DNA from: Saccharolobus islandicus REY15A
GTDB taxonomy: Archaea > Thermoproteota > Thermoprotei_A > Sulfolobales > Sulfolobaceae
DNA: 64,000 nt
NCBI RefSeq assembly: GCF_000189555.1
Contig: NC_017276.1
Reading direction: 5' to 3' (one strand)
The position numbers and the translations under genes were made by a program. This document shows positions 12,169 through 54,731 of this stretch, piece by piece. The notes under the pieces are model-generated. The model saw only the letters and a program-made list of their open reading frames with translations. It did not search any database and was not told the origin of the DNA. Position 1 is the first letter of the stretch; the number at the start of each line of letters is the position of its first letter.

Positions 12169-12942
12169 GTGATAAGCTTTATTTTAGTAGCACCTCATGG
12201 AGATGAGATAATTGATCCAAAAGATGAAAAATCATCGTTGTTAAATAAGGCAATGAGGGAAGCTGCAAGTTTAGTTAAGGCTGATAAGTACATCGTAATT
12301 ACTCCCCATAATATAAGAATTGACGATCACATGGCGGTAATATTAACGCAATACGCTGAAGGAAAGCGGGGTAAAATCAAGAGAAAGTACCTTTGTGATA
12401 GGGGATTGGCTTACGAAATATATGAAAGGGCAAAAGGGAGTGGCCTACCGGTGGTTGGTGTTAATTTCGGGGCTTTAGAAGGAAAGGAGTCAAAGATCGC
12501 GCTAGATTGGGGGTCATCGATTCCTCTTTACTTCTTGAAAAGGAGGAGAATTGTATTGTTGACTCCAGCTAGGGGAGTTAAAAGGGAGATATTGAGGAAG
12601 TTTGGAGTAGTAATTGGTGAAGTTTTAAGAGATCATAGAAAAAGGGTTGGAGTAATAGTTAGTGCGGATCACGCTCATACCCACGATCCTAAGGGACCTT
12701 ATGGTTATTCAGAATACGCTGCGGTTTACGATTCCACTATTGTAGATATTTTTGAGAGCGAAAGATTTGAGGATTTGATGAAGATTGATGATAAAGTTAT
12801 TAGTGAGGCGAAGCCAGATAGCTATTGGCAATTGCTCATAATGCTCGGAATTCTTGAGAGTAGTTATAATAAGTATGGCGTTAAGTTGATGGAATATCAA
12901 GTCCCAAGTTATTTTGGGATGATGGTTGCTCTACTCAGTTAA
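12169..12942 (+). CDS. LigB/MEMO1-like (extradiol dioxygenase subunit B fold) protein
   Basis: APHG, ITPH, DWG..IPL, SADHAH, YFGM motifs. Confidence 0.75.
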   Translation: MISFILVAPHGDEIIDPKDEKSSLLNKAMREAASLVKADKYIVITPHNIRIDDHMAVILTQYAEGKRGKIKRKYLCDRGLAYEIYERAKGSGLPVVGVNFGALEGKESKIALDWGSSIPLYFLKRRRIVLLTPARGVKREILRKFGVVIGEVLRDHRKRVGVIVSADHAHTHDPKGPYGYSEYAAVYDSTIVDIFESERFEDLMKIDDKVISEAKPDSYWQLLIMLGILESSYNKYGVKLMEYQVPSYFGMMVALLS

Positions 12943-13336: not shown

Positions 13337-13753
13337 TCATACGATGGTACTTATAAATCCAGCAAATACACCGTTTAATAAATTATAAGCTATCGTTAAT
13401 CCTAAGTACGTTTGAGGATAAGACACTTGGAAGGCATATGGCAATAAGGAAAATACCAAATAAGATGATGCAGTGATTAACGCTATCTTTCTAACTTGAA
13501 TTAAAGACGACTTTTCAAGAGTTGTTCTCGTAGGGAAGACAAATGCTACTAATATTACCAATATTAAAATCTGCACTATTCCTTCCGCAGGGGAGTGAAT
13601 CATGGCTTCAATTGGTGAAATATCAAAGGTACTTGGAGGATAAAATGCCTTAACTATTAACGATACTATGGCCATAATTATAGTTAGGATAAAAGAATAC
13701 CCAATTGACGTGGCAATATTATAACCTAAAATTCTACTGTTGTGCTCCACCAC
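13337..13753 (-). CDS. Four-TM membrane protein
   Basis: Hydrophobic profile; overlaps the SPFH gene stop. Confidence 0.7.
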   Translation of the reverse strand: MVEHNSRILGYNIATSIGYSFILTIIMAIVSLIVKAFYPPSTFDISPIEAMIHSPAEGIVQILILVILVAFVFPTRTTLEKSSLIQVRKIALITASSYLVFSLLPYAFQVSYPQTYLGLTIAYNLLNGVFAGFISTIV

Positions 13754-14600
13754 TCTGTTGTTGCCCCCTTCTGCCTATACCTACTCTTATTAGGCCATCT
13801 GGTAGATTAACTATTGTTGATAAGTTTGGATAATACGGCACTCCGATTGCCATATTGACTGCTGCTGCGTTCTGCTGCTCAGCTAATATTCTAGCCAAAC
13901 CCATTCGAACTGCATCCATTAATGGTATTCCCATATCCCTTAATTGTATTATTCTTCTCAGCTCTGGATCTTGAGGCAGAAGTCTAGTTATTCTTACAGA
14001 TATTAGGTCTACACCTATTTCTGCTAAGAATTGCTTTAACGCTGCTGTAACTGCAGTAGAAATTTCAGAGAACTTCTTGAAAACATCAGTTAGATTTACA
14101 CGATTAAGTACTGAACTAACTTCTTGATCTACAATTGGTGAAATATAATGAGCTAGATCTGCGTCTTTGAAATATAGGGAACCGAACTGGACATTTGTGA
14201 CTAAGGCTGCAGGGTTTTGAACTCTAAAGTATATTGCGGTCTCATACTCTAAGGGCACTAAATCGTCTGTCTGGCTAACACCCGCTACTCTAACCTCATG
14301 TCTAGTGGTCGAGATGAAATAAACTATAGTATCATATGGTAACGTGTTATACCTAAACTTAGATAGAAAAGCTGAAACCGGATTTCCTGGAGTTTGAATA
14401 TTATGACTACCGGGAGGTAAATCTGCAACAATTTGTCCTTGTATTAAAACTATGGCTCTCTCTGTGGGTTGTACTATTATAAGTGATTTCGAAGTAATTG
14501 CCTCCTTCGGATATTTGAAAATTATAGCATCAGCTGTCATAAAACTTGATCCATCTTCTTTTTCTGTCGAAATAACTTGACCTCTAATGGTTAAAGACAT
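13734..14600 (-). CDS. SPFH/band-7 domain protein
   Basis: SLIIVQPTERAIVLIQGQIVADLPPG N-terminus, YFRVQNP, GVDLISVRI motifs. Confidence 0.8.
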   Translation of the reverse strand: MSLTIRGQVISTEKEDGSSFMTADAIIFKYPKEAITSKSLIIVQPTERAIVLIQGQIVADLPPGSHNIQTPGNPVSAFLSKFRYNTLPYDTIVYFISTTRHEVRVAGVSQTDDLVPLEYETAIYFRVQNPAALVTNVQFGSLYFKDADLAHYISPIVDQEVSSVLNRVNLTDVFKKFSEISTAVTAALKQFLAEIGVDLISVRITRLLPQDPELRRIIQLRDMGIPLMDAVRMGLARILAEQQNAAAVNMAIGVPYYPNLSTIVNLPDGLIRVGIGRRGQQQSGGAQQ

Positions 14601-14643
14601 ATCTTAGAATTATTCTAGTGTTGGTATTTAAATTTTTTCGTAA

Positions 14644-15120
14644 CTATTTTCTAAGTTCTGGAGGATAAAATAATTTCATTCTATCATAAAATACTGCTCT
14701 TAGGTCATTAAGTAATGGTTCGAACTCTTCAATTCTATTATTCTTAGCAAGCTCAACTAATTGTGAAGCAATATCAATCATTTTCATATCATGATTAACT
14801 ATTTGATCCAACTCCTCAGTTGTAACTTTCCACCTGGCGTAAATATCCGCACCTCCACCCTGACTTGACATTATATTGTTTATTAGCTCCCTGATTTTAG
14901 AGATCAAAAACTCCATTACCTTAAGTTGGGGTGAAAATGGATCAGTTGAGGCAATAAAGCTTTCCTTTTCTGAGATTATCCTTATCGTTTGTTCTAATCT
15001 ATCAATAACTGCTCTTCTAACTAGGAAATCGTCTTGTCTAATTAGATCTTTTGCTTTATACCCCCTATAACCTGGTAAAAGTAATTGTAACTGCTCAATG
15101 GGGGTTAACTCTCTTGGCAT
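14644..15120 (-). CDS. Conserved helical hypothetical protein upstream of SPFH gene
   Basis: PGYRGYKAKDLIRQDDFLVR motif; co-oriented with 13734-14600. Confidence 0.7.
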   Translation of the reverse strand: MPRELTPIEQLQLLLPGYRGYKAKDLIRQDDFLVRRAVIDRLEQTIRIISEKESFIASTDPFSPQLKVMEFLISKIRELINNIMSSQGGGADIYARWKVTTEELDQIVNHDMKMIDIASQLVELAKNNRIEEFEPLLNDLRAVFYDRMKLFYPPELRK

Positions 15121-18658: not shown

Positions 18659-19840
18659 TTATTTATTACTGAATTTTATTGCCAATAATGCATGGGCTAA
18701 AGCACCTAGTTTCAACACATCCTCATCTACGCAGAACTTAGAGCTATGGTTGGGATATATGCAACCTTTCTTCTCATTTCTAGTTCCTAGGAAGAAATAC
18801 GTACCGGGGGCTTTCTGTAGGAATCTAGAGAAATCCTCAGCTCCTAGAACTGGCTCAGTCTCAACGACTGTGGATATTGAAGATAGAATTTTCATCACCT
18901 CATCAGTTACTTCTGGGTTATTTACTGTAATTGGATAGACGTCCTCCATGAATTTGACCTCACAAGTTGCACCATAAATTCCGCATATTGATGAAACTAT
19001 TCTCCTCATGTAATCCTTAGCCTTACTCCTAACATTCTCGTCTAGACTTCTAATCGTTCCCTGCATTTCAGCGTCATCTGGTATTATATTATCCTTTGTC
19101 CCAGAATGTATCGTAGTTATGGATATGACGAAGGGTTGAACGGGATCGATTTGCCTAGCTGTTATACCGTAAATTGCGTTGGCTATTTGCAAGGATATGA
19201 AAATTGGGTCTATGGTCTCATGAGGAGCAGAACCGTGACCACCCTTTCCGTGAACCACAATCTTAAACGCATCTGGCGTAGCCATTATTGGACCTTTTCT
19301 AGTTGCGAAGACTCCAGATGGATAGCTACTGGATATATGTATACCAAATACGTAATCTACACCATTCATGACTCCAGCCTCGATCATTGGTTTCGCTCCT
19401 CCTAATCCTCCATCCTCCTCTGCGGGCTGAAATATTAACCTAATTTCGCCACTGAGTAAATCTTTATTTTTAACCAAGAGATAAGCTCCACCTAAGAGCA
19501 TTGCTACGTGAGTGTCATGACCACACGCGTGCATTACCCCTTTAACCTTGGACTTGAACTCTACGTCACTAGTCTCCTCTACGGGGAGGGCATCCATATC
19601 CGCTCTTAAGGCAACTGTCTTCCCGGGTTTATTTCCCCTAATCTTACCAACTACTGCAGTGGGCAATCCAACGCCCTCCTCTACTTCTATTCCCAATTTC
19701 CTTAACGTTTCTGCCACTAGTTTAGAGGTGCTATACTCTTTATAGGAAAGTTCAGGATTCTCGTGAATTTTCCTCCTAATTTGAATTATCCAATCGTCTA
19801 TTTCCTTTACGTCGTTCTTCAACTTCTCAACTAAATCCAT
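18659..19840 (-). CDS. cpsA: Thermostable carboxypeptidase, M20D amidohydrolase
   Basis: HENPEL, LRADMDAL, HACGHD, QPAEE, GGH, AEDF motifs. Confidence 0.92.
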   Translation of the reverse strand: MDLVEKLKNDVKEIDDWIIQIRRKIHENPELSYKEYSTSKLVAETLRKLGIEVEEGVGLPTAVVGKIRGNKPGKTVALRADMDALPVEETSDVEFKSKVKGVMHACGHDTHVAMLLGGAYLLVKNKDLLSGEIRLIFQPAEEDGGLGGAKPMIEAGVMNGVDYVFGIHISSSYPSGVFATRKGPIMATPDAFKIVVHGKGGHGSAPHETIDPIFISLQIANAIYGITARQIDPVQPFVISITTIHSGTKDNIIPDDAEMQGTIRSLDENVRSKAKDYMRRIVSSICGIYGATCEVKFMEDVYPITVNNPEVTDEVMKILSSISTVVETEPVLGAEDFSRFLQKAPGTYFFLGTRNEKKGCIYPNHSSKFCVDEDVLKLGALAHALLAIKFSNK

Positions 19841-19906
19841 AAGAGATATAGTGAGCTAAGAATAAAAAGCTAATTCGTTAATAAAAGTTAACCGTAAACC
19901 TTTTCA

Positions 19907-25045: not shown

Positions 25046-25850
25046 CTATTCTTTGGATAGCAAGATCTTCAACACCGTTTTACCTATCTTATCCCCAGTA
25101 TATTTTCCCTCTAAGTTATTCATCTCAACCCAAGTTCTCAAATCATTATCCCCACTTGTTTAATGCTTGCCTTATTTGGTTCTCATAATCCTTAACGTTA
25201 ACCATCTCCTCTTCTATAAAAGTAGCTAACCATAAGTCCAGAAGCCTTTCCAGATCCTTTAAGGGATCTTGACTATCATCAACTCTTAAGTCTACATACT
25301 TCCCTACAATCAAGGGATCAATCTCCTTCTCGCTTTTATCAACAGTTTTAACAACAATGATTGCAGCACTCTGCTTTCCCCTCCTATCTCCACCCTTACT
25401 TTCCCCAGCCTTTAGCGCTCTAAGAATTTTCTCGTAAATTTTGCCCTTACTTTCTGCCTCCTTTGCCATCGCCTCTAGAACCTCTTCTCCGGCCAATATA
25501 TTGCCTTGTACAGTGAAGTTATTTCCAACAATATGTCCAGCATATGAATAGCATTCTTTTCCCGTAAATGCTGCCGCACTTCCCTTAGTGTCGACAATAC
25601 CGACTTGCCTCTTTTCCCTTAAAGGGTCAGACTCAGTTAGAACTCTTATGGTATCTGATGCACTATAACCCTTTTCTAGTAATGATAAACCATCTACACC
25701 ATAAGTTAAATTGGCTAAGGCTTGAGTAGCTATTGCACCAACATTCGGTCTCAACCAAGGTACGAAAGCTCCTACAGCTAAGAATTTGCTTGCTACTCCC
25801 ACTCCCCAAGCCTTTTCCTCTGGGTCGTAAATGACTATAGAGAAGGTCAT
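25046..25850 (-). CDS. DUF1028 Ntn-hydrolase-like protein; C-terminal ~33 aa out of frame
   Basis: TFSIV..GVGVASKF..GAIATQA signature; ORF stops at 25146, another frame continues NDLRTWVEMNNLEGKYTGDKIGKTVLKILLSKE to 25046. Confidence 0.8.
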
Positions 25851-44009: not shown

Positions 44010-45237
44010 GAGAATGTCCGGAATGTAATTATCTGAATGAATATATAAATGGAATGATAAATATTAATATTATCAGAAGTATAAAACCTGGTTAATCTGG
44101 AAAAACTTGATCATGGAAAAATATCAAGTTAAGAAGATTTATTTGTCATGCATGGTGATGCTTGAGTGCGTGATGACGTTTCTTAGAGTTGAACTATTCG
44201 ACGTCCTGGAGGGGTTCTCCGTTGGACGGCTAGGAACATCCTGATATTGTAGAAGACTCCCAGGACGTGGAGGAAGGCTTCGTTCCTCCACACCGTGGTC
44301 CCATAGGGCCTCCAGAACTTGTACAGGAAGGTACCGAAGAACTCCACGTGGGCCCTCAGAGTCGTGAAAGGTTTCTCCATAGCTATGAGCTGGGTTGGGG
44401 AGGGCGAGAAACCCCTATCAGCTATCTTAATCCCCTTGAGCGGGGACTTAAATCTCTCATCCGAGAAGTTGGCAGGCTTCACCGTGATGGACCTTACGAA
44501 GAGGGAAGTGGAGATAACTATTAGGGCCTTCAGCCCGAAGTGAGAGACTCCCCTCTTCTTGGTCCACTTCCCCTTGAATCTCCTCTTAGTTCTCCCCAAG
44601 GAGAGCAGCTTCTTGGCCTTCTTCAAGTTACCTTCCTTCTTCTCCAGCTCTGCCTTCTCTCGGAAGGTCTCCACGCTCCTCTTCCCAAAAGGTAAGTCTA
44701 GAAGGAAGGAGTCAACGAGCCACGCAATGAAGTCCAGGAAGTGGGCACTGGCAGGGAGGTAACTGGGTAGGCACTTCTCCTCAAGCTTGAAGGAAATTTC
44801 CAGCAACTTCTTCCTTACTTCGTATACTCTTCCCACGAAATCGTGTAATGTGCTCTTGCCCACTTTCCTCCCAACGAACTACGCCACAACGACGTTCACG
44901 TTGACCATCTTTACCGCGTCTCTATAGGAACAGGAGTAGAGTACCATGACGATTAGTAACTTCAGGTAAATCAGAGTGCCTTCTCCTAGAACTCTTTCTA
45001 AATCTAGGGTGTCTAGCACGGGTTTGATATCCGTTAACCATTTTTCCCTCCACGGCATATCCTCTCTTGGGGGGAGAGAATAGTACACTAAGTTTGGGAT
45101 GCGTCTTAGTGTACGTGCCATGGTACTACTCTCTCCTCCCATAACTTAAGTATTACTACAATTTAATCCAAGATAATGCTAAGAATCAATTTATTCTCAA
45201 AAATTAAAATTCAGTTTTTTACATTCCGGACACTCTC
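44010..45237 (-). mobile_element. 1228-bp IS (IS5-like, ISC1234/ISC1212 type), copy 1; transposase has a nonsense codon
   Basis: 19-bp TIR GAGA(A/G)TGTCCGGAATGTAA; TGG>TAG at 44879-44881 relative to copy 2; flanks ACCT / TCGA. Confidence 0.85.
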
Positions 45238-46380
45238 TCGAGCATAGTCCACACTACTTACGCAAGTGATGAAACCTGCTTTACTCACTAGCGTCAAAGG
45301 GCTTATTATAATACAGCACAGCCCAAGTAATAACAGCCTAGCACAAGCAGTAATCAACTTCTTACCCCTAAGCCTACCCTTATGATCCTCATAAAAACGC
45401 TTAATAATAGGATTAACCTTGATAGCAGTCAAAGCTGCAAGATAGAAAGCCCTCCTCAAAACAGCATCACCCCTCTTAGAAATACCTCTCAATACAACAC
45501 TCTTACCACTAGACTCAACAACCGGGTCAAGACCACAATAAGCAACAAACCTCTTCTTATCACTAAAGCGCCTAATATCACCAACCCTAGCCAAAATAAT
45601 ACAACCCAAGGTTTTACCAATACCCGGAATAGTGAAAATCAAACTATCCTTGGGAACAAAATTCTCAAGCTCCTTCTCAATCTCCCTCTTCCTAGCTTCA
45701 AGCCTCTCCAACTCCTCCAAAAGAAACCTCAGACAACACTATACCATCTCCACTCCTCAAAACCTCCTCCAAATTCTTCCTGGACAGACTATCCCTATAG
45801 CCTAAAAGTACCAAATCCCTCCTCAGCCTATTCTTAACCCTAGCAATACTCCTAGTAACGAAATCCCACTGGCTAGTCAACTCCCTAGCATCACTTGTTG
45901 TAAACCCACTACCCATACTTACAACTATTTCTGCTAGCTTTTTAGCATCATTCTTATCACTCTTCTTACCCCTAAAATCCTTAAACTTCTTGAGAATAAA
46001 GGGATTAATAATCCTAACTCACCCATTAAGTACTTTGCTAGGTTAACGTGGTAAACTCCAGTACTTTCAATACCCACTTTGCAACCCTTAGGCAAAATCT
46101 TCCTTATCTCCTCAAACCCTTGCCTATCATTAGGAAACTCGTAGTATTTACCTTGAAAATACATGATTAATTTATCTTTTGATACATCTATTCCTGCAAC
46201 TGGGGCCTCCATGTATACTCACCCTTATGTTTTATTCGGGCTTCAAGCCCAACTTCCGGTTTGAATTGGAGGCTGCCAAGCTAACAACCGAGCTTTAAGC
46301 CCAAAGAGGTCAACGGCCTACACCCCAGTCAGATCTGTATTACACAGATCTGACTAATATGTTTTATATAAGGAAGTCAG
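45238..46380 (-). mobile_element. IS110-family element (ISC1190-like), frameshifted, downstream end cut by the 1228-bp IS
   Basis: GIDVSK and IESTG DEDD-RuvC motifs, IPGIG, SG.S..RGISKRGD, KRFY in three frames; ~170-bp non-coding end upstream of the ORF. Confidence 0.88.
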
Positions 46381-46436: not shown

Positions 46437-47141
46437 CTATTCCATCTTCTTTCCTACTACTAATACTCCTATTACTGCCTCACCCTCCTTCAGGTTAAGT
46501 GCCGTATTAAGAATATAGTCATTAAAACCGCCAACGGCACATATACCCAGGCTGAGTGCTGTAGCTACTAGATATAAGTTCTCCATGACTATTCCCGCAT
46601 CAATCAACGCAAACCTCGCACCTCTGTTACCATACTTTACCAAGACTTTCCAATACCTCGTCGTTAAGATGATAAGCAACGGAATTGTATTAATATCTGG
46701 AATAGAACTAACAATATTTGACTTAAGAATTTCTAACTGAATCTCGTTATTAAGCTTCTCTAGAGAGTGATACAACGGATTATAGTGATATACACCTATT
46801 TCCAAGTCGGATATAAAAGGAATTAAATACACCTCGGTCTCTGCTAAACCTCCTGCTGAAGGAAACATTCTATATATAATCTCACTGTCTTTCTTCCTAA
46901 CTCCGACAGAGTAATAAAGTAAGTCAGAAATCGTATGAATGTCTACCTTTTCTTCCTTAAACTTTCTCGTTGAAGACCTAGAAGTGATTACTCTCTGAAA
47001 GTTTTCTCTTATCTCCCTAGGTTTAGGTAGGGATATAACCTTAACCCCTTCATAAACTTTCGGATAATTATCTGGAATTAACGTAAAAGTAAAATTCTGT
47101 GTCTTTAGGTAAAATTCCTCAAATACATCCATCACGACCAC
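46437..47141 (-). CDS. SagB/McbC-type azoline dehydrogenase (FMN nitroreductase fold)
   Basis: SRSSTRKF, PSAGG, YHYNP, Lys-Tyr motif KYGNRG, DAG..MENLYL..GG. Confidence 0.9.
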   Translation of the reverse strand: MVVMDVFEEFYLKTQNFTFTLIPDNYPKVYEGVKVISLPKPREIRENFQRVITSRSSTRKFKEEKVDIHTISDLLYYSVGVRKKDSEIIYRMFPSAGGLAETEVYLIPFISDLEIGVYHYNPLYHSLEKLNNEIQLEILKSNIVSSIPDINTIPLLIILTTRYWKVLVKYGNRGARFALIDAGIVMENLYLVATALSLGICAVGGFNDYILNTALNLKEGEAVIGVLVVGKKME

Positions 47142-48440
47142 CTAAGGGAATGGTACCGGTTCTTCGGTAAATAGTTCAACCTCACTAAGTCCTATCTTCT
47201 TCCTTATAGTATAATATCTCTGGTGACCTAAGAAAGGCATGTCTGGAGTATGGGCTGGGGTTAGGTCAGGAACCATCACCCTAACCAGTTTTCCCCTACC
47301 TATATACTTCTCCACGTTAAAGTCCTTGTAAATTATCTTATATTGGCTTAGTACCTCTCCAATAAGTTCCTTGTAACTTAACGACTCTTCCCTTTCTAGC
47401 TCCTCGTAATTAATGCTTTTAAGGCTGCTTAGATAATTCAACAGAAAGTCTTTCCTAACATACGTGTAGTAAAGCGGGACTAACCAGAAATCAATTAAAA
47501 GATCTGGGGTGAGCTTCTTTGCAAGTTTAACCTCCTCTTCACTTATTTTACTGAAGGACGAAATTGACTGATAAACTTCGTAAATTGCTCTCCTTAACGC
47601 ATTTTCAACAGTTATATCTGCAGACGCACCTCCGACATAAAATCCGTTGATAAAACCTAAACAACCTATGACGAAAAGGCCCTTAAACTCGTTAATAAAG
47701 CGTAAGCAAATAACATCTTCGTTTTCAAGTACTTTATACTTCCTTTTTAGTCTCTCTGGGATCCGTATTCTCAAAGGGCTTATACGTGAAATCCATGAAA
47801 TATTTATTGCATCCCTCTCCAAGTATTCTAACAATCCATGAATAAACGCTTTTTCGAAATCTTCATGATATGATAATCCTCCGGTGGTAGAGTATGCTAT
47901 TAGATCTTCACCGGGCTTTATCAAATCTGTTAAGTAAATTATCTGCGAGGGTACGTAAACTGTTTTATTGTCTTTATAGGATGTAGCTCTGGTAAACGTT
48001 ATAACTGCCTCATCTGAATAGTCCTTGAAAAAGAATAACTTCTTGAGTTGTTCTCTTGAAAAGAACTTGTAACTCGTAGGGAGGATATCAAACTTCTCTT
48101 TTATTTCTGCAACTTTTCCGAAAATAGATGTGTTATCGTCAAAAAAAGTCATATAACCGTAAAATCTTTCTAAGAACTCTCCAATAGCACCCTTAAGACT
48201 CTCTTCCTCTTTTTCCCCCTTACCTCCTGCAGGCACGATATCTTTTAAGTACCTTAAAAGCGGTGTAAATTCAACAGGGAAATTTTTAGTATATCTAGCC
48301 TTAATATATTGAGTAGCTAATTCAGATTCTAACAGCTCATAGTTTACATAGTTTAAAAGTTTTGTAATTATAATATTATCATATTTTTCTATGGTATAAC
48401 CGAAAGCGGGTCCTAAAAATTCATTAATTAAATCTTGCAT
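47142..48440 (-). CDS. ycaO: YcaO cyclodehydratase (D protein)
   Basis: STTGGLS...GLLEYLERDA ATP-binding motifs, GASA, RAIYE; C-terminal PVPFP (PxPxP) typical of azoline-forming YcaOs. Confidence 0.92.
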   Translation of the reverse strand: MQDLINEFLGPAFGYTIEKYDNIIITKLLNYVNYELLESELATQYIKARYTKNFPVEFTPLLRYLKDIVPAGGKGEKEEESLKGAIGEFLERFYGYMTFFDDNTSIFGKVAEIKEKFDILPTSYKFFSREQLKKLFFFKDYSDEAVITFTRATSYKDNKTVYVPSQIIYLTDLIKPGEDLIAYSTTGGLSYHEDFEKAFIHGLLEYLERDAINISWISRISPLRIRIPERLKRKYKVLENEDVICLRFINEFKGLFVIGCLGFINGFYVGGASADITVENALRRAIYEVYQSISSFSKISEEEVKLAKKLTPDLLIDFWLVPLYYTYVRKDFLLNYLSSLKSINYEELEREESLSYKELIGEVLSQYKIIYKDFNVEKYIGRGKLVRVMVPDLTPAHTPDMPFLGHQRYYTIRKKIGLSEVELFTEEPVPFP

Positions 48441-49098
48441 TTAGGGCACCCTGGAATCTTTAATGGTGTATTTATTATTAATTCCCCCTCCATTACGTCT
48501 ACATATACTAATTTACCGCCAAATTTGTCGCTGTTAAAAAGCATCTTAGAAAATCCCAATAATAACAACTCTGAGAAATCACTTAGGGCAGGTGTAGCTT
48601 CTTTTATCATAACGCCATCAACTTTTACATCCAGAATTAACCTAGAATTCTTTAGCCATAAGTATATCTCATACATACAAGGGATGGCTTTCTTATTGAC
48701 AACGTATATGAAAAACCTATAGGGATCCATTATGTACGCTATAAGGACTTTTTTAAACCTTGTTAAGTCAATTGGCTGACTGACGAGAAAGTGAATACTA
48801 CTCGAGACAATTAATACCTTTTCGTTCTCTGGCACCTCTTCAATTGAATTAAAGACATTAACGAACTGCGGATAATGAAATCTTATTCTATTAATTACTG
48901 CATTTATTTTCTCCTCCTTTTCCGGTACTAACATTCTAATTTCTTTCAACTCCTCCGTGTTTAATGACATTAAGTTGTTAAATTCATCTTCACTAAACTC
49001 TATTAAACCTGAAGCTTCCGAATATGCAAGATACTTATTATAATTTTTAAATATTAAAAAAAAAAGGTGATATGGTTAGGGTAGGATGCATAGTACAT
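48428..49098 (-). CDS. E1/ThiF-like cyclodehydratase partner (C protein); true start probably ATG 49098, interrupted by an A10 homopolymer frameshift
   Basis: C-terminal KIPGCPKC; overlaps the ycaO start; ATG 49098 has a GAGGT SD and joins the 48970 frame if the T10 run is read as T11. Confidence 0.7.
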
Positions 49099-49102
49099 GA
49101 CC

Positions 49103-49210
49103 TCATTTTTTCCCCAACCAACAACCTATCCAACAGCCAATCCAACTAAAAACTACTTTATTATCTCTGCTTATTTCTATCGCCTTTCTATAGGTGTAAT
49201 CTATCTGCAC
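49103..49210 (-). CDS. Candidate RiPP precursor 1: (M)QIDYTYRKAIEISRDNKVVFSWIGCWIGCWLGKK (alternative ATG 49258 gives 51 aa)
   Basis: Hand-translated; directly upstream of and co-oriented with the C-YcaO-B genes; GCW repeats. Confidence 0.7.
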   Translation of the reverse strand: MQIDYTYRKAIEISRDNKVVFSWIGCWIGCWLGKK

Positions 49211-49310
49211 GTTCTTTCCCCATTCTTTTTCCCCACTTTCTAAAATAAAAATAAACATTATAGTTAAAACTTTTTAACAGTATACACTATTAATATTATT
49301 ATTAGAGTAT

Positions 49311-49973
49311 TTGAGTAGATTGATGAAGAGTCTTTTAACTTACTTTCTCAAACAATTAATATTTAGCGAACCGGCTGTTTACAATATTTTGTTAGGCTTT
49401 ATTATAGCCTTAATTATTTCAAGTACTACAAAATTTGATATTAGCTTAAATGTCTCTGAAAATCTAATACTTAGTATACTTTCAGTTGGGGTGAGTTTTA
49501 TATTTCTTTACAACTTTTCTTCTCTTCTATTCTTTATTAAGTTCGGAAGATTAAGATTGGGATTATACTTAATATTACTTTACCTTTCTGGGGAAATAGC
49601 AGCGCTATTTTACACGTTGTTGTTTATTATCTTATACCGCTTCCTTTTTAGTAATCCTGCGACTTTTAGTATTCCATATTTTCTCATTATGACCCTTTTA
49701 TTGTTTCTATTTTTAGTATCCATTTCCACGTTTTTATCGTTTATACTGACTAATGGAAGGCTGGACTGCCCTATAATTATGACAATTTACCCTATAATAG
49801 TTGTACCAACATTTATATTCTCCTTTTACAAGAGTGAGATAAATCCTCTTTGGATATTTGGGATGGTGAGTGAAAATATTTCAATTCCTCTTACCTTAGG
49901 CATTATTTTCTTGGTATCTCCAATCATTTTCATATATTTGCTAATATTTTTGATAAAAAAGTTTCTAAGCTAG
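49311..49973 (+). CDS. ABC-2-like permease / membrane protein
   Basis: Six hydrophobic segments; inside the RiPP locus. Confidence 0.7.
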   Translation: MSRLMKSLLTYFLKQLIFSEPAVYNILLGFIIALIISSTTKFDISLNVSENLILSILSVGVSFIFLYNFSSLLFFIKFGRLRLGLYLILLYLSGEIAALFYTLLFIILYRFLFSNPATFSIPYFLIMTLLLFLFLVSISTFLSFILTNGRLDCPIIMTIYPIIVVPTFIFSFYKSEINPLWIFGMVSENISIPLTLGIIFLVSPIIFIYLLIFLIKKFLS

Positions 49974-49974
49974 C

Positions 49975-50076
49975 TCATATTTTCTTGCAGCAACACCAGC
50001 AACCAAACCAGCAACCAAGCATTATCGGATTAATTTCGGTTAGATCTTTTGATTTTCTATTGGTACTTACTATCAC
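49975..50076 (-). CDS. Candidate RiPP precursor 2: MIVSTNRKSKDLTEINPIMLGCWFGCWCCCKKI
   Basis: Hand-translated; GGTGA SD 9 nt upstream of GTG; GCWxGCW core plus CCC. Confidence 0.75.
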   Translation of the reverse strand: MIVSTNRKSKDLTEINPIMLGCWFGCWCCCKKI

Positions 50077-50187
50077 CAATTTTTATCACCTTTACTACGT
50101 TAGTAAATTATAATTAAAAAGAATTTGCTTGGTTAATGAGTTTTAACTCTATTCATCGTTTTTATTACTTTTTACGGGATTTAAATT

Positions 50188-50925
50188 ATGGAATTAGAGA
50201 AATCTATGATAAAGAGGTTTTCGTTCTCACCAGCTGCAATATCTTATTTACTCGGAATGATGTTACTGGACTCATTAGGACTTTATTTTGCATTAAATAG
50301 TATTAGAAACATAGATGCAGGAATAATATGGTACAGTGTTGCGATATTACTGTTGGTAGCTAGCTTATCAACAGGTTTTAGCATTACATTAATCTACCAG
50401 TCCTCTGCATTAGCTTACTATGTAAGATTTAGTAGACTTAAAATGTCTAACTACATCCTGAGTTTATTCATAGGTTCACTGATCTCTGCGACTATATACT
50501 CGGTAACTTTCGCAGCTCTCATTACACCATTAATAACTAAACTAACACTTGACCATTTTTACGAAATTATCAGGCTTGATAATATTTTACCCTTCATAGC
50601 CTCAGCTCTAATCTCAAGTCTCTTCATTCTATCCTTAACCTTTACAATCATTGCAACATTACTGGTTAAGGTTGGGGCTAAAGCGTCAAACTATGCTTAC
50701 TACATCTTCTTTGTGTTGTTAGCAATTTCAGACCTCTCGCCTTCAGCCTCATCGTCACTTAACCCCTTCTACGAAGCTGAAAATATAATTTCGTACTCCC
50801 TCATCCACGATAGCATAAGTATTTACTCCATTGAAGTAGCATTACTGGCGATAGTCTTATTGTTATTAGGGAATTGGATTTTGAAGAAGATCAAGGCACT
50901 AAGACTGGAAGAGGTTGTGTGGTAA
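50188..50925 (+). CDS. ABC-2-like permease
   Basis: Six TM segments; stop overlaps the ATPase start. Confidence 0.75.
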   Translation: MELEKSMIKRFSFSPAAISYLLGMMLLDSLGLYFALNSIRNIDAGIIWYSVAILLLVASLSTGFSITLIYQSSALAYYVRFSRLKMSNYILSLFIGSLISATIYSVTFAALITPLITKLTLDHFYEIIRLDNILPFIASALISSLFILSLTFTIIATLLVKVGAKASNYAYYIFFVLLAISDLSPSASSSLNPFYEAENIISYSLIHDSISIYSIEVALLAIVLLLLGNWILKKIKALRLEEVVW

Positions 50926-51557
50926 TGTTGGAGATTAAAGATTTATCTATCAATTTCGAGGACTTTACGATCTTAAAAAACATTAACTTAAAACTTGAAA
51001 ATCAAGTGTGTGTAATACTGGGTCCTAATGGTTCCGGAAAAACTACCTTGCTAAGAGCTATATCTGGAATAATTCCATACAAGGGTTCGATAAAGATAAA
51101 CGGTAAGGAGGTTAGGAGTGCTAAGAGGATTTTAGAATACTCCACAAATCTTCAAGAGGTATACACTATAGGTAACTCCGCATGGGATACTGCGAAAATA
51201 ATAGCGGAGATTAAGGGCGGAGATTTAAAAGAATTCACAAACATCTTAAGCTATCTGGACGTAGACAGAAAGGTGATACACAAGCCTATTTATAAGATGT
51301 CTACTGGACAGAGGAGTTTAGTATCGTTAGCATTGGCACTTTTTATGAAGCCTCAAATAGTTACTATCGACGAGCCGATAGAGAATGTGGACGTCAATAG
51401 GAGGGATAGGGTGATATCGTTATTACGTGAAAGAGTGAATGAGGGTTTAATTGTAACACACCAGAAGGAGTTAATCAAGATGTTAGAGAATAATAAAAAG
51501 GAAGTGATAATTTATACGATAGTTAACGGTGAGCTTGTTGAAGGTGATAAAATGTAA
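50925..51557 (+). CDS. ABC transporter ATP-binding protein (start ATG 50925)
   Basis: GPNGSGKT, MSTGQ signature, IDEP, TH. Confidence 0.9.
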   Translation: MLEIKDLSINFEDFTILKNINLKLENQVCVILGPNGSGKTTLLRAISGIIPYKGSIKINGKEVRSAKRILEYSTNLQEVYTIGNSAWDTAKIIAEIKGGDLKEFTNILSYLDVDRKVIHKPIYKMSTGQRSLVSLALALFMKPQIVTIDEPIENVDVNRRDRVISLLRERVNEGLIVTHQKELIKMLENNKKEVIIYTIVNGELVEGDKM

Positions 51558-51651
51558 TAGGAAAGCGAGGGGAAGAAAAGATGTATATATTGCATGCTGG
51601 GTTGGTTGCTGGTTCAGTTGTTGGACTTCGAGTGAGGTTAAAAAATCTTAA
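51544..51651 (+). CDS. Candidate RiPP precursor 3: MIKCNRKARGRKDVYIACWVGCWFSCWTSSEVKKS
   Basis: Hand-translated; shares NRK leader motif, xCW repeats and C-terminal KK with the other two; overlaps the ORF-track ORF 51581 in another frame. Confidence 0.6.
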   Translation: MIKCNRKARGRKDVYIACWVGCWFSCWTSSEVKKS

Positions 51652-52306
51652 CTATAATCTAAGTTTAAATCCATTGTCAGGAAAATTAGTAAAGGGTGAA
51701 AGAATTATTAGTAAAGAAATAGATGTTCAGAAATCCGTAGAAATAAGCGAGAAGCTTTATCATCGTGTTATGCTTAATGCATCAAAGACAATATTAGATT
51801 TCATAGGGCTTGGAAGTCTTACTACTTTTTTATTAACAAGCCTTATCTCAAACCCTCTTACTTTTAACATTAGCATAATAGTCTTTTCCACCATATACGT
51901 GTTTATCTCTTGGAGGATGAGTAGGTTTGTATATCCATTTATTAAGACATTTAACTCTCACAAATCTTCGTTAATTGTCAAAAAATTTCCCTTACTTGTT
52001 AAGCTAACCTACACACTTTCGCTCATAATACTTTACGTCCTATTTCTACTCTCATTTCGAATTCACTTCCTATCTAATTTACCAATTTTTCTTGTAGGTG
52101 CATACATATCTTTCATTGGGAGTCAGTTAATTACTACCATAAGATTTCTGAAAGAGAACTCTATAGAGTACGTTCTAGTTACATCTTATATTCTTTCAGG
52201 AGTAGCTATCATAATATCTCCTTTCCATATAATAACCCTCTTAATCCCGCCACTATCAGCCTTTTTGTACAAATTGATAAGGGGGCTGAGGAATGGAGCT
52301 AGATAA
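51581..52306 (+). CDS. Polytopic membrane protein (possible immunity factor); real start may be downstream, e.g. ATG 51770
   Basis: About six TM segments in the C-terminal 180 aa; 5' part overlaps candidate precursor 3. Confidence 0.6.
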   Translation: MYILHAGLVAGSVVGLRVRLKNLNYNLSLNPLSGKLVKGERIISKEIDVQKSVEISEKLYHRVMLNASKTILDFIGLGSLTTFLLTSLISNPLTFNISIIVFSTIYVFISWRMSRFVYPFIKTFNSHKSSLIVKKFPLLVKLTYTLSLIILYVLFLLSFRIHFLSNLPIFLVGAYISFIGSQLITTIRFLKENSIEYVLVTSYILSGVAIIISPFHIITLLIPPLSAFLYKLIRGLRNGAR

Positions 52307-52589
52307 ATTAATAAAACTGTTGAAGGATAATAAGGAGTTAAATGTTGGAGTTAGGTTAGGGATTCTACTAGGTCTTTATTATACTAGGTCTGCATGGTTT
52401 AAGGAATTGTTAGAAGCCACCAGGTTAAATAAGGCTGAACTGTATCAGCATCTTAAGATCTTGCATAAGAGTGGATACGTAGAGATTAAATATATCCCTA
52501 CAGTTGAAGGTAAGAGGTTGAAGGTTTTTATAACTAAAAAGGGCGATGAATTAATAAAGCAAGTCGTTGAACTATTAAGGGAGAAGTAA
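52293..52589 (+). CDS. Winged-HTH transcriptional regulator (ArsR/MarR-like)
   Basis: FKELLEAT.LNKAELYQHLKIL..GYV...ITKKG pattern. Confidence 0.85.
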   Translation: MELDKLIKLLKDNKELNVGVRLGILLGLYYTRSAWFKELLEATRLNKAELYQHLKILHKSGYVEIKYIPTVEGKRLKVFITKKGDELIKQVVELLREK

Positions 52590-52730: not shown

Positions 52731-53308
52731 ATAATTAAGATAGAAGAAATTACAAAGTACTTTGGAAAAAGAAAAGTTCTTGATAATGTCACTTTCACAG
52801 TTAATGATGGGAAATCGTTGGATTTGTTGGACTGAATGGTGCAGGGAAAACCACGACTATCAGGATCATTGTTGGAACAATAGAACCCAACTCAGGCGAT
52901 GTATTTATAGACGGTTATAGTATAACAAAAGGAACGCTTCAAAAGAAGTAGGCTGGGTACCAGAACTACCGATATTCGAATTAGATGCTAGAGCGCTTGA
53001 CTATTTCATCTACATAGCAGGATATTACGGTATAGGGAATAAAGAAGCTAAGGAAATGGGAATGAAGCTATTTGAAGAAGTGGGACTGTTGGGTAGGGAG
53101 AATGACAATCTCAAAAGTTATTCCCAGGGTATGAAAAAAAGGTTTGCCCTCGCTGTTTCCCTCATATCTAATCCAAAAAATTTTGTGTTCGACGAAGTAC
53201 TTAACGGCTTGGATCCACAAGGGATACAGTTCTTTAGAAATTTAGCACTTAAGATGAAAAAGAAGGGAAGGCTGTACTCTTCTCCTCTCATATCCTCTCT
53301 GAAGTCGA
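52731..53308 (+). pseudogene. ABC ATPase pseudogene (frameshifts; cut by IS)
   Basis: GLNGAGKTT, YSQGMKKR and FDE in different frames; SH-loop region abuts IS copy 2. Confidence 0.8.
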
Positions 53309-54536
53309 GAGAATGTCCGGAATGTAATTATCTGAATGAATATATAAATGGAATGATAAATATTAATATTATCAGAAGTATAAAACCTGGTTAATCTGGA
53401 AAAACTTGATCATGGAAAAATATCAAGTTAAGAAGATTTATTTGTCATGCATGGTGATGCTTGAGTGCGTGATGACGTTTCTTAGAGTTGAACTATTCGA
53501 CGTCCTGGAGGGGTTCTCCGTTGGACGGCTAGGAACATCCTGATATTGTAGAAGACTCCCAGGACGTGGAGGAAGGCTTCGTTCCTCCACACCGTGGTCC
53601 CATAGGGCCTCCAGAACTTGTACAGGAAGGTACCGAAGAACTCCACGTGGGCCCTCAGAGTCGTGAAAGGTTTCTCCATAGCTATGAGCTGGGTTGGGGA
53701 GGGCGAGAAACCCCTGTCAGCTATCTTAATCCCCTTGAGCGGGGACTTAAATCTCTCATCCGAGAAGTTGGCAGGCTTCACCGTGATGGACCTTACGAAG
53801 AGGGAAGTGGAGATAACTATTAGGGCCTTCAGCCCGAAGTGAGAGACTCCCCTCTTCTTGGTCCACTTCCCCTTGAATCTCCTCTTAGTTCTCCCCAAGG
53901 AGAGCAGCTTCTTGGCCTTCTTCAAGTTACCTTCCTTCTTCTCCAGCTCTGCCTTCTCTCGGAAGGTCTCCACGCTCCTCTTCCCAAAAGGTAAGTCTAG
54001 AAGGAAGGAGTCAACGAGCCACGCAATGAAGTCCAGGAAGTGGGCACTGGCAGGGAGGTAACTGGGTAGGCACTTCTCCTCAAGCTTGAAGGAAATTTCC
54101 AGCAACTTCTTCCTTACTTCGTATACTCTTCCCACGAAATCGTGTAATGTGCTCTTGCCCACTTTCCTCCCAACGAACCACGCCACAACGACGTTCACGT
54201 TGACCATCTTTACCGCGTCTCTATAGGAACAGGAGTAGAGTACCATGACGATTAGTAACTTCAGGTAAATCAGAGTGCCTTCTCCTAGAACTCTTTCTAA
54301 ATCTAGGGTGTCTAGCACGGGTTTGATATCCGTTAACCATTTTTCCCTCCACGGCATATCCTCTCTTGGGGGGAGAGAATAGTACACTAAGTTTGGGATG
54401 CGTCTTAGTGTACGTGCCATGGTACTACTCTCTCCTCCCATAACTTAAGTATTACTACAATTTAATCCAAGATAATGCTAAGAATCAATTTATTCTCAAA
54501 AATTAAAATTCAGTTTTTTACATTCCGGACACTCTC
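53309..54536 (-). mobile_element. 1228-bp IS (IS5-like), copy 2; intact 319-aa transposase (53482-54441)
   Basis: Same 19-bp TIRs; flanked by 4-bp TSD TCGA; near-identical to 44010-45237. Confidence 0.9.
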
Positions 54537-54731
54537 TCGATTGTGATTGAGATAAAATGGGAATGAAAGTGTAGGGACAAACAGTTTAACAAATTATGAC
54601 CGTTATTGCTGAGGCTCCTCGCCCAAGATTTCGTTTACATTCTCCCTTAACAACTTAAATGTTATGTTAAACAATTCTGGATTGCCGATAAAAGGGATAG
54701 TTATATTAAATTCGCAAGTGATTATAATTAG

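Follow-up and report, generated by a model that had tools for sequence, protein, structure and literature searches.

Three paralogous Cys-Trp precursor peptide genes around one YcaO gene cluster of Saccharolobus islandicus REY15A

How many peptide substrates belong to one azole-peptide gene cluster in the Sulfolobaceae? The question is raised by a locus of Saccharolobus islandicus REY15A, which we analyzed within a stretch of 64,000 nt of contig NC_017276.1 (the window). It encodes a putative E1-like protein (C), a YcaO cyclodehydratase (D) and a SagB-type dehydrogenase (B). An earlier note on this DNA had pointed to three very short open reading frames (ORFs) with Cys-Trp repeats scattered through this locus, here called P1, P2 and P3, and had proposed them as substrates of a pathway for peptides that are made by the ribosome and modified after translation (RiPPs). 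We conclude that they are three paralogous precursors, and three fixed substrates, of a single azole-peptide cluster of the thermoacidophisin family, that is, of the class known as thiazole/oxazole-modified microcins (TOMMs) or linear azol(in)e-containing peptides (LAPs). We would give this reading a probability of about 70%.

All three ORFs were found again, and the translations first given for them could be reproduced. Their starts were then refined by comparison with homologues on contigs of relatives (labeled L001, L002 and so on), which had been gathered through their YcaO homologues by exact-protein look-ups and a metagenome scan. YcaO protein and alignment scans of a separate genome-contig collection returned no Sulfolobales locus and one unrelated match of 23% identity. 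P1 (49103–49210, minus strand) encodes 35 aa with the core SWIGCWIGCW and is the first gene of a P1-C-D-B operon. It starts with GTG here and with ATG in relatives; a 51-aa form was rejected, the upstream extension not being conserved. P2 (49975–50079, minus strand) encodes 34 aa with the core GCWFGCWCCC. Its TTG start follows 6 nt after a GGTGA Shine-Dalgarno sequence (50086–50090), which had been recognized before, a T6 run lies 13 nt 3′ of the stop, and the gene is convergent with that for a 220-aa membrane protein. P3 (51538–51651, plus strand) encodes 37 aa with the core ACWVGCWFSCW. It sits within the transporter operon, where it overlaps the 3′ end of the ATP-binding cassette (ABC) ATPase gene by 20 nt. 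Its TTG start is kept in 8 of 8 copies from seven loci, with GGTGA at 51528–51532 (5–6 nt upstream). An upstream extension of the next membrane ORF overlaps P3; since it contains stops in L010, it is no competing frame. The corresponding 241-aa form of that ORF was rejected, as its upstream part is not conserved.

In each peptide, a leader of some 20 residues, carrying a basic motif in its N-terminal part, precedes a short core. Before every core cysteine stands a small residue (Gly, Ala, Ser or Cys); most of the cysteines are followed by Trp. The three types can be aligned from end to end, and we therefore regard them as paralogues; M1 and both CW units are invariant in the alignment. A leader motif RK[A/S] had been described for all three; what the leaders have in common is a basic [RK][RK][AST], which is shortened in P1 of L003 and absent from P2 of L022. 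The C-terminal KK, also put forward as a family feature, did not hold up, as the tails differ between orthologues. Neither Pfam nor NCBIfam gave a match for P1, P2 or P3. The view that such peptides do not arise here by chance was borne out: the six-frame translation of the 64 kb contains the pattern CW..CW four times, where 200 shuffles gave 0.005 on average, and three of the four occurrences fall inside 2.5 kb beside the YcaO gene. The fourth (25525–25542) is off-frame within a 234-aa ORF and was set aside as a chance match.

The earlier note had named codon-level conservation as a test. Comparison of the window with L003, where the divergence is informative, gave ratios of non-synonymous to synonymous divergence (dN/dS) of 0.10 for P1, 0.10 for P2 and 0.11 for P3, with proportions of synonymous differences (pS) of 0.57–0.68. 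Variable alignment columns lie mostly at third codon positions (28 of 35, 25 of 34 and 28 of 36 for P1, P2 and P3, respectively). All indels in the three frames are multiples of three, no stops occur, and the start codons of the peptide types align across homologues. In the cores, pS is about 1.0 (saturated) as against a proportion of non-synonymous differences (pN) of 0.048; the P2 core of the window differs from that of L003 at six synonymous sites and at no non-synonymous one. P1, P2 and P3 are thus genuine, paralogous coding sequences under purifying selection, tied to the YcaO/SagB/E1-like cluster.

Variation is greater in the leaders than in the cores, and this bears on a further suggestion of the earlier note, namely that the peptides might form a small combinatorial library made by one synthetase. 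Cyanobactins and prochlorosins likewise have several precursor genes per enzyme set, but in those systems the leaders are conserved and the cores hypervariable. In our locus the leaders diverge and the cores stay nearly invariant, and each type forms its own orthologue group. Since conservation is stronger in the cores than in the leaders, the idea of a library finds no support; what we see are three fixed, strongly conserved types.

The three peptides had been assigned to three probable transcription units, and each of these units is indeed marked by the palindrome GTTAA-N6-TTAAC. One site lies upstream of P1 (49263–49278), another between P2 and the divergent transporter operon (50132–50147), and a third over the last codons and the stop of P3 (VKKS*), before the membrane protein and regulator genes (51637–51652). 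The window contains four exact sites versus 0.27 expected, and none of 100 shuffles reached four; three of the four are those at the transcription units. The positions are kept in other loci, the site at the end of P3 being present in L003, L010, L020, L021 and L022, and in Sulfolobus acidocaldarius a single site serves the divergent P1/P2 pair. The remaining site in the window (19877–19892) is found 37 nt upstream of a 393-aa ORF (18659–19840, minus strand) that looks amidohydrolase- or peptidase-like by eye only; it may be due to chance or may hint at a co-regulated peptidase.

Since the conserved palindrome overlaps the VKKS* end of P3, part of the constraint on this end may act on the DNA. 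One could extend this thought and explain the conservation of P2 and P3 altogether by signals in DNA or RNA (an operator, an overlap or a promoter), or regard both as relics of duplication that are not translated. P3 does share 20 nt with the 3′ end of the ATPase gene and its last 15 nt with the palindrome, and the S-to-P change at its C-terminus in L010 sits in the palindrome spacer, with the arms kept. However, the middle 79 nt of P3 and the entire P2 overlap with no conserved ORF, and yet they show synonymous saturation with few amino acid changes. The enrichment of third-position changes, the restriction to in-frame indels, the conserved starts and the GGTGA Shine-Dalgarno sequences also speak for translation. 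We therefore consider an explanation without translation very improbable.

Linkage of the peptides with ycaO in relatives, another check proposed before, is seen across genera: orthologues occupy the same positions in S. acidocaldarius and on metagenome contigs. All three types are present in L010 (YcaO 90% identical to that of the window), in L003 (77%) and in S. acidocaldarius (L001/L002, 65%), the latter with an additional P3-like paralogue. Stygiolobus caldivivus (L020) has P1 and P3 and lacks P2, and L022/L023 have P2 and P3 on contigs too short to show P1. Altogether, P1 orthologues were found in L001, L003, L004, L005, L010–L014 and L020, and P2 orthologues in L001, L003, L010, L021 and L022. 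Every peptide copy on a contig with readable context lies in or beside a YcaO cluster. More distant clusters (YcaO 32–39% identical) have single precursors, whose cores likewise consist of GCW, SCW or ASW units.

In Sulfurisphaera ohwakuensis (L021), an insertion sequence (IS) interrupts the YcaO gene. P1 has lost both cysteines there and the core of P2 is shortened, so that decay of these peptides accompanies the disruption of YcaO, which we count in favor of a common pathway. The P1-like peptide ends in …SWIFRWIVGYK, and YcaO is truncated by a transposase; the stretches concerned are 12700–12798 and 13457–15039. P3 is intact in the same locus.

Some further variants were noted in these loci. 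A P1 variant in L011 (474–575) has a single GCW unit (…FRWIGCWFAGNNR), one four-residue repeat having been lost in frame. The P3-like fourth paralogue of S. acidocaldarius (L001, 14650–14781) has the core AYWACCWSRCW and lies about 4 kb outside the cluster; a duplicated 3′ end of the ABC ATPase gene precedes it, and an integrase gene and conjugative-plasmid-like genes are nearby. In two of the distant clusters (L017, 390–1700, and L019, 6681–8249; YcaO 32–38% identical), a protein of the Amidohydro_1 family is encoded between the precursor and the C gene, and D and B are separated by the gene for an additional protein of about 230 aa. The clusters of the Sulfolobaceae have neither of the two.

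It is conceivable that only P1 is a substrate of the synthetase and that P2 and P3 are translated paralogues with another role, which are not heterocyclized. They could possibly serve as a small membrane-embedded subunit or an immunity factor of the ABC transporter, or as an inducer or decoy peptide. Such a role would agree with the fixed place of P3 behind the ATPase gene, with its coupled TTG start, and with its survival in L021 next to a disrupted YcaO gene and a decayed P1. It would also agree with the behavior of P2, which travels with the gene for the 220-aa membrane protein; that protein has an orthologue in S. acidocaldarius, where the convergent pair has been flipped as one unit. On the other hand, P2 and P3 have in their cores, the most conserved part of either peptide, exactly the small-residue/Cys/Trp units found in P1, their leaders are homologous to the P1 leader, and azole clusters with several precursors are common. 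A division of roles of this kind is unlikely in our view, though it deserves to be kept in mind.

Of the enzymes, D and B belong to families known from azole synthetases. D (47142–48440, minus strand) is a YcaO cyclodehydratase (PF02624, 6e-39) of the SagD type, scoring 222.8 against TIGR03604 (cut-off 219.25). It shares 65% identity with the YcaO of S. acidocaldarius across 100% of its length and ends in …EEPVPFP, a PxPxP terminus of which E-P-V-P-x-P is invariant in nine homologues. B (46437–47141, minus strand) belongs to the SagB family of flavin mononucleotide (FMN)-dependent dehydrogenases with nitroreductase fold (PF00881; TIGR03605 score 153.7, cut-off 78.4). D and B are accordingly bona fide members of their families. 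For C (48428–49091, minus strand), the putative E1-like, McbB-like partner of YcaO, Pfam and NCBIfam gave no match, and its assignment is at the level of the fold. A model of the intact 220-aa orthologue (L011:582–1244) had McbB as its best match in the PDB (E 3.6e-6, template modeling score (TM) about 0.42, at a mean predicted local distance difference test score (pLDDT) of 67.9), followed by TruD/LynD (cyanobactin heterocyclases), ThiF and MoeB. The C proteins of the family align with each other and share invariant Cys residues and an LKIPGCxxC motif. The N-terminal beta-beta-beta-alpha-alpha region of the model is of low confidence and may be the part that binds the leader.

P1 had been said to end 4 nt before the start of the E1-like gene, an ATG at 49098. 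The frame opened by that ATG stops after 14 codons; the conserved ATG, 11 nt beyond the stop of P1, is that at 49091. The earlier note also overlooked a frameshift that the C gene has in this genome. A T10 run (49056–49065) contains one extra T, whereas the run measures 8–9 nt in four close relatives, and the residual ORF of 180 aa lacks the N-terminal beta-sheet region. Three causes come into question: an error in sequencing, true inactivation, or slippage that is tolerated. Because of the frameshift, the pathway may be inactive in this genome, unless the shift is an artifact of sequencing or is bypassed.

Taken by its gene content, the locus combines a SagD-type YcaO with PxPxP terminus, a SagB-type dehydrogenase and short precursor genes close to the enzymes: P1 is directly upstream of C, and P2 and P3 are at most 2.5 kb away. 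Based on this arrangement, we propose that C binds the leaders, that D would convert the core cysteines to thiazolines by ATP-dependent cyclodehydration, and that B would oxidize these to thiazoles. The products would be three fixed, hydrophobic and Trp-rich peptides with two (P1), up to five (P2) and three (P3) thiazoles. Cyclodehydratases prefer sites at which a small residue comes before the Cys, and the small residue in front of each core Cys fits such thiazole formation. The ABC ATPase and the paralogous membrane proteins may function in export of the products, in protection of the producer, or in both.

The strict Trp after Cys is another matter, as we know of no cyclodehydratase preference that would account for it. 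Together with the three contiguous cysteines of P2, it might indicate that the peptides are substrates but carry Cys-Trp cross-links, or disulfides in the CCC of P2, instead of or besides alternating thiazoles and tryptophans. The conserved set of the cluster (A, C, D, B, transporter and regulator) includes no radical-SAM enzyme, P450 or other tailoring enzyme, however. A P450 gene in L003 is not conserved; it is located about 4 kb outside the cluster on the regulator side, at a distance of 6.5 kb from P1, the nearest biosynthetic gene. Such a different chemistry therefore seems quite improbable to us.

Several of the facts reported above count against three fixed azole substrates, and a few more have to be added. 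The sample is small, with about seven independent loci. In L022 the basic leader motif is missing from P2, and part of the constraint on P3 comes from the ATPase 3′ end and the palindrome. P3 has stayed intact next to the broken YcaO gene of L021, which could mean that its role is independent of modification. The confidence of the C model is moderate, both in pLDDT and in TM, and the frameshift splits the C gene at about codon 13, in just the N-terminal part that may bind the leader. Lastly, no leader peptidase that would account for maturation is encoded in the cluster.

Concerning regulation, the last gene of the locus (52293–52589, plus strand) encodes a winged-helix protein (HTH_34; PF13601, 4.8e-12). 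The palindrome is probably its operator, and the regulator would then act on the putative sites at each of the three transcription units; the peptides would therefore be co-regulated with the enzymes. A bolder interpretation goes beyond three separate substrates and sees the three peptides as one multi-component thiazole/Trp archaeocin, comparable to two-peptide bacteriocins, with P3 supplied from the immunity/export operon and one regulator controlling all parts through the palindrome, its copy at the P3 stop among them. If true, it would be the first azole RiPP characterized from Crenarchaeota, but we regard this as speculative and rather unlikely.

The affiliation with thermoacidophisin rests on the groupings of YcaO and C and on P1, which aligns with the published …FSWFGCWFGCW… precursor. 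The cluster family was named by Cox, Doroghazi & Mitchell in 2015 from genomes only (PMC4603692), and the P1-type peptide is listed there as the S. acidocaldarius thermoacidophisin precursor (Table S2). The same table assigns the S. acidocaldarius peptide string to S. islandicus REY15A; the two entries are identical, which looks like a copy error. According to the text, the precursors are rich in “Tyr and Gly”, whereas the sequences listed are rich in Trp (W), Gly and Cys, and the listed T. mathranii precursor is likewise C/W-rich. The published clusters and the one studied here share discrete C and D proteins, B, an ABC transporter and a regulator, with P1 as orthologue of the listed peptide. 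They differ in that the paper lists one precursor per cluster and makes no mention of the P2 and P3 types, the layout in three units or the palindrome.

The three peptides had been called unannotated. This is correct for P2 and P3 but not for P1: its exact 35-aa sequence is annotated in NCBI/UniRef for this genome, and its type had been published, as just described. No start variant that we tried for P2 or P3 is present in a collection of 15 billion proteins. Annotated genes of the P2 type are limited to S. ohwakuensis and a single further NCBI assembly (P0022), and P2- and P3-type genes have also been called in a few metagenome contigs. A profile of 14 peptides run exhaustively against 1.84 billion representative proteins retrieved eight true peptides only; two further matches (P0053 and P0054) are long repetitive translations that share only the SWLGC unit and were taken as spurious. 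It is a small family, restricted to the Sulfolobaceae and to a few relatives from metagenomes. In the searchable literature, we found no mention of P2 or P3, no further paper using the name thermoacidophisin, and no azole-containing ribosomal peptide isolated or characterized from Sulfolobales or any other crenarchaeon. The P1 type was thus predicted in 2015, while the P2 and P3 types appear to be undescribed. What appears to be new is that the precursors are of three conserved types and are spread over three transcription units with a common mark.

Among better-known systems, microcin B17 (McbA, McbBCD, McbEF) resembles the cluster in its E1-like partner (putative here), YcaO protein and FMN dehydrogenase, in the match of the C model to McbB, in heterocycles at Gly-Cys sites (only predicted here) and in the ABC-type pump alongside. 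It differs in being bacterial, with a single precursor whose core is rich in Gly, Ser and Cys and contains no Trp, and C here has about 220 aa and no sequence-family match. Heterocycloanthracin (BalhA1/A2 with BalhCD) has periodic cysteines after a small residue and one synthetase for more than one precursor. Clusters of this type are similar to ours in both the Cys spacing and the several precursors, but their precursor genes are adjacent and in tandem, whereas P1, P2 and P3 are distributed over both strands and three units, one of them within the transporter operon. Moreover, Trp follows most cysteines in the cluster described here.

The 220-aa membrane protein (49311–49973, plus strand) is polytopic and a distant paralogue of a 245-aa polytopic protein (50188–50925, plus strand), whose gene is the first of the transporter operon and conserved in all loci. 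The ABC transporter ATPase follows (50925–51557, plus strand; about 210 aa from MLEIKDL; PF00005, 3.5e-22). Behind P3 comes a membrane protein of about 200 aa (51700–52306, plus strand), which starts after the P3 stop at a position that is uncertain in detail; its counterpart in L003 has 203 aa. Pfam and NCBIfam gave no match for the membrane proteins of the cluster.

The whole RiPP locus is flanked by two direct IS copies (44010–45242 and 53309–54541) of about 1233 bp, which differ at two positions, resembling a composite transposon. The transposase gene of the first copy is split by a stop, and the second copy encodes an intact 319-aa protein. The latter copy adjoins an ABC-ATPase-like fragment (53056–53394), whose ORF continues into the element. 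A mobile-element comparison with collections of plasmids (in protein mode) and phages (in DNA mode) gave no match.

As the chemistry and the enzyme family are well known, we see in these findings a refinement of a known system and no new kind of system. Two of the three substrates, P2 and P3, are invisible to standard annotation, and three conserved substrates per cluster alter the targets for mass spectrometry and the choice of genes for deletion. The hosts, S. acidocaldarius and probably also S. islandicus REY15A, are genetically tractable model thermoacidophiles, so the prediction is directly testable. If active, the products would be heat- and acid-stable peptides in the competition among archaea.

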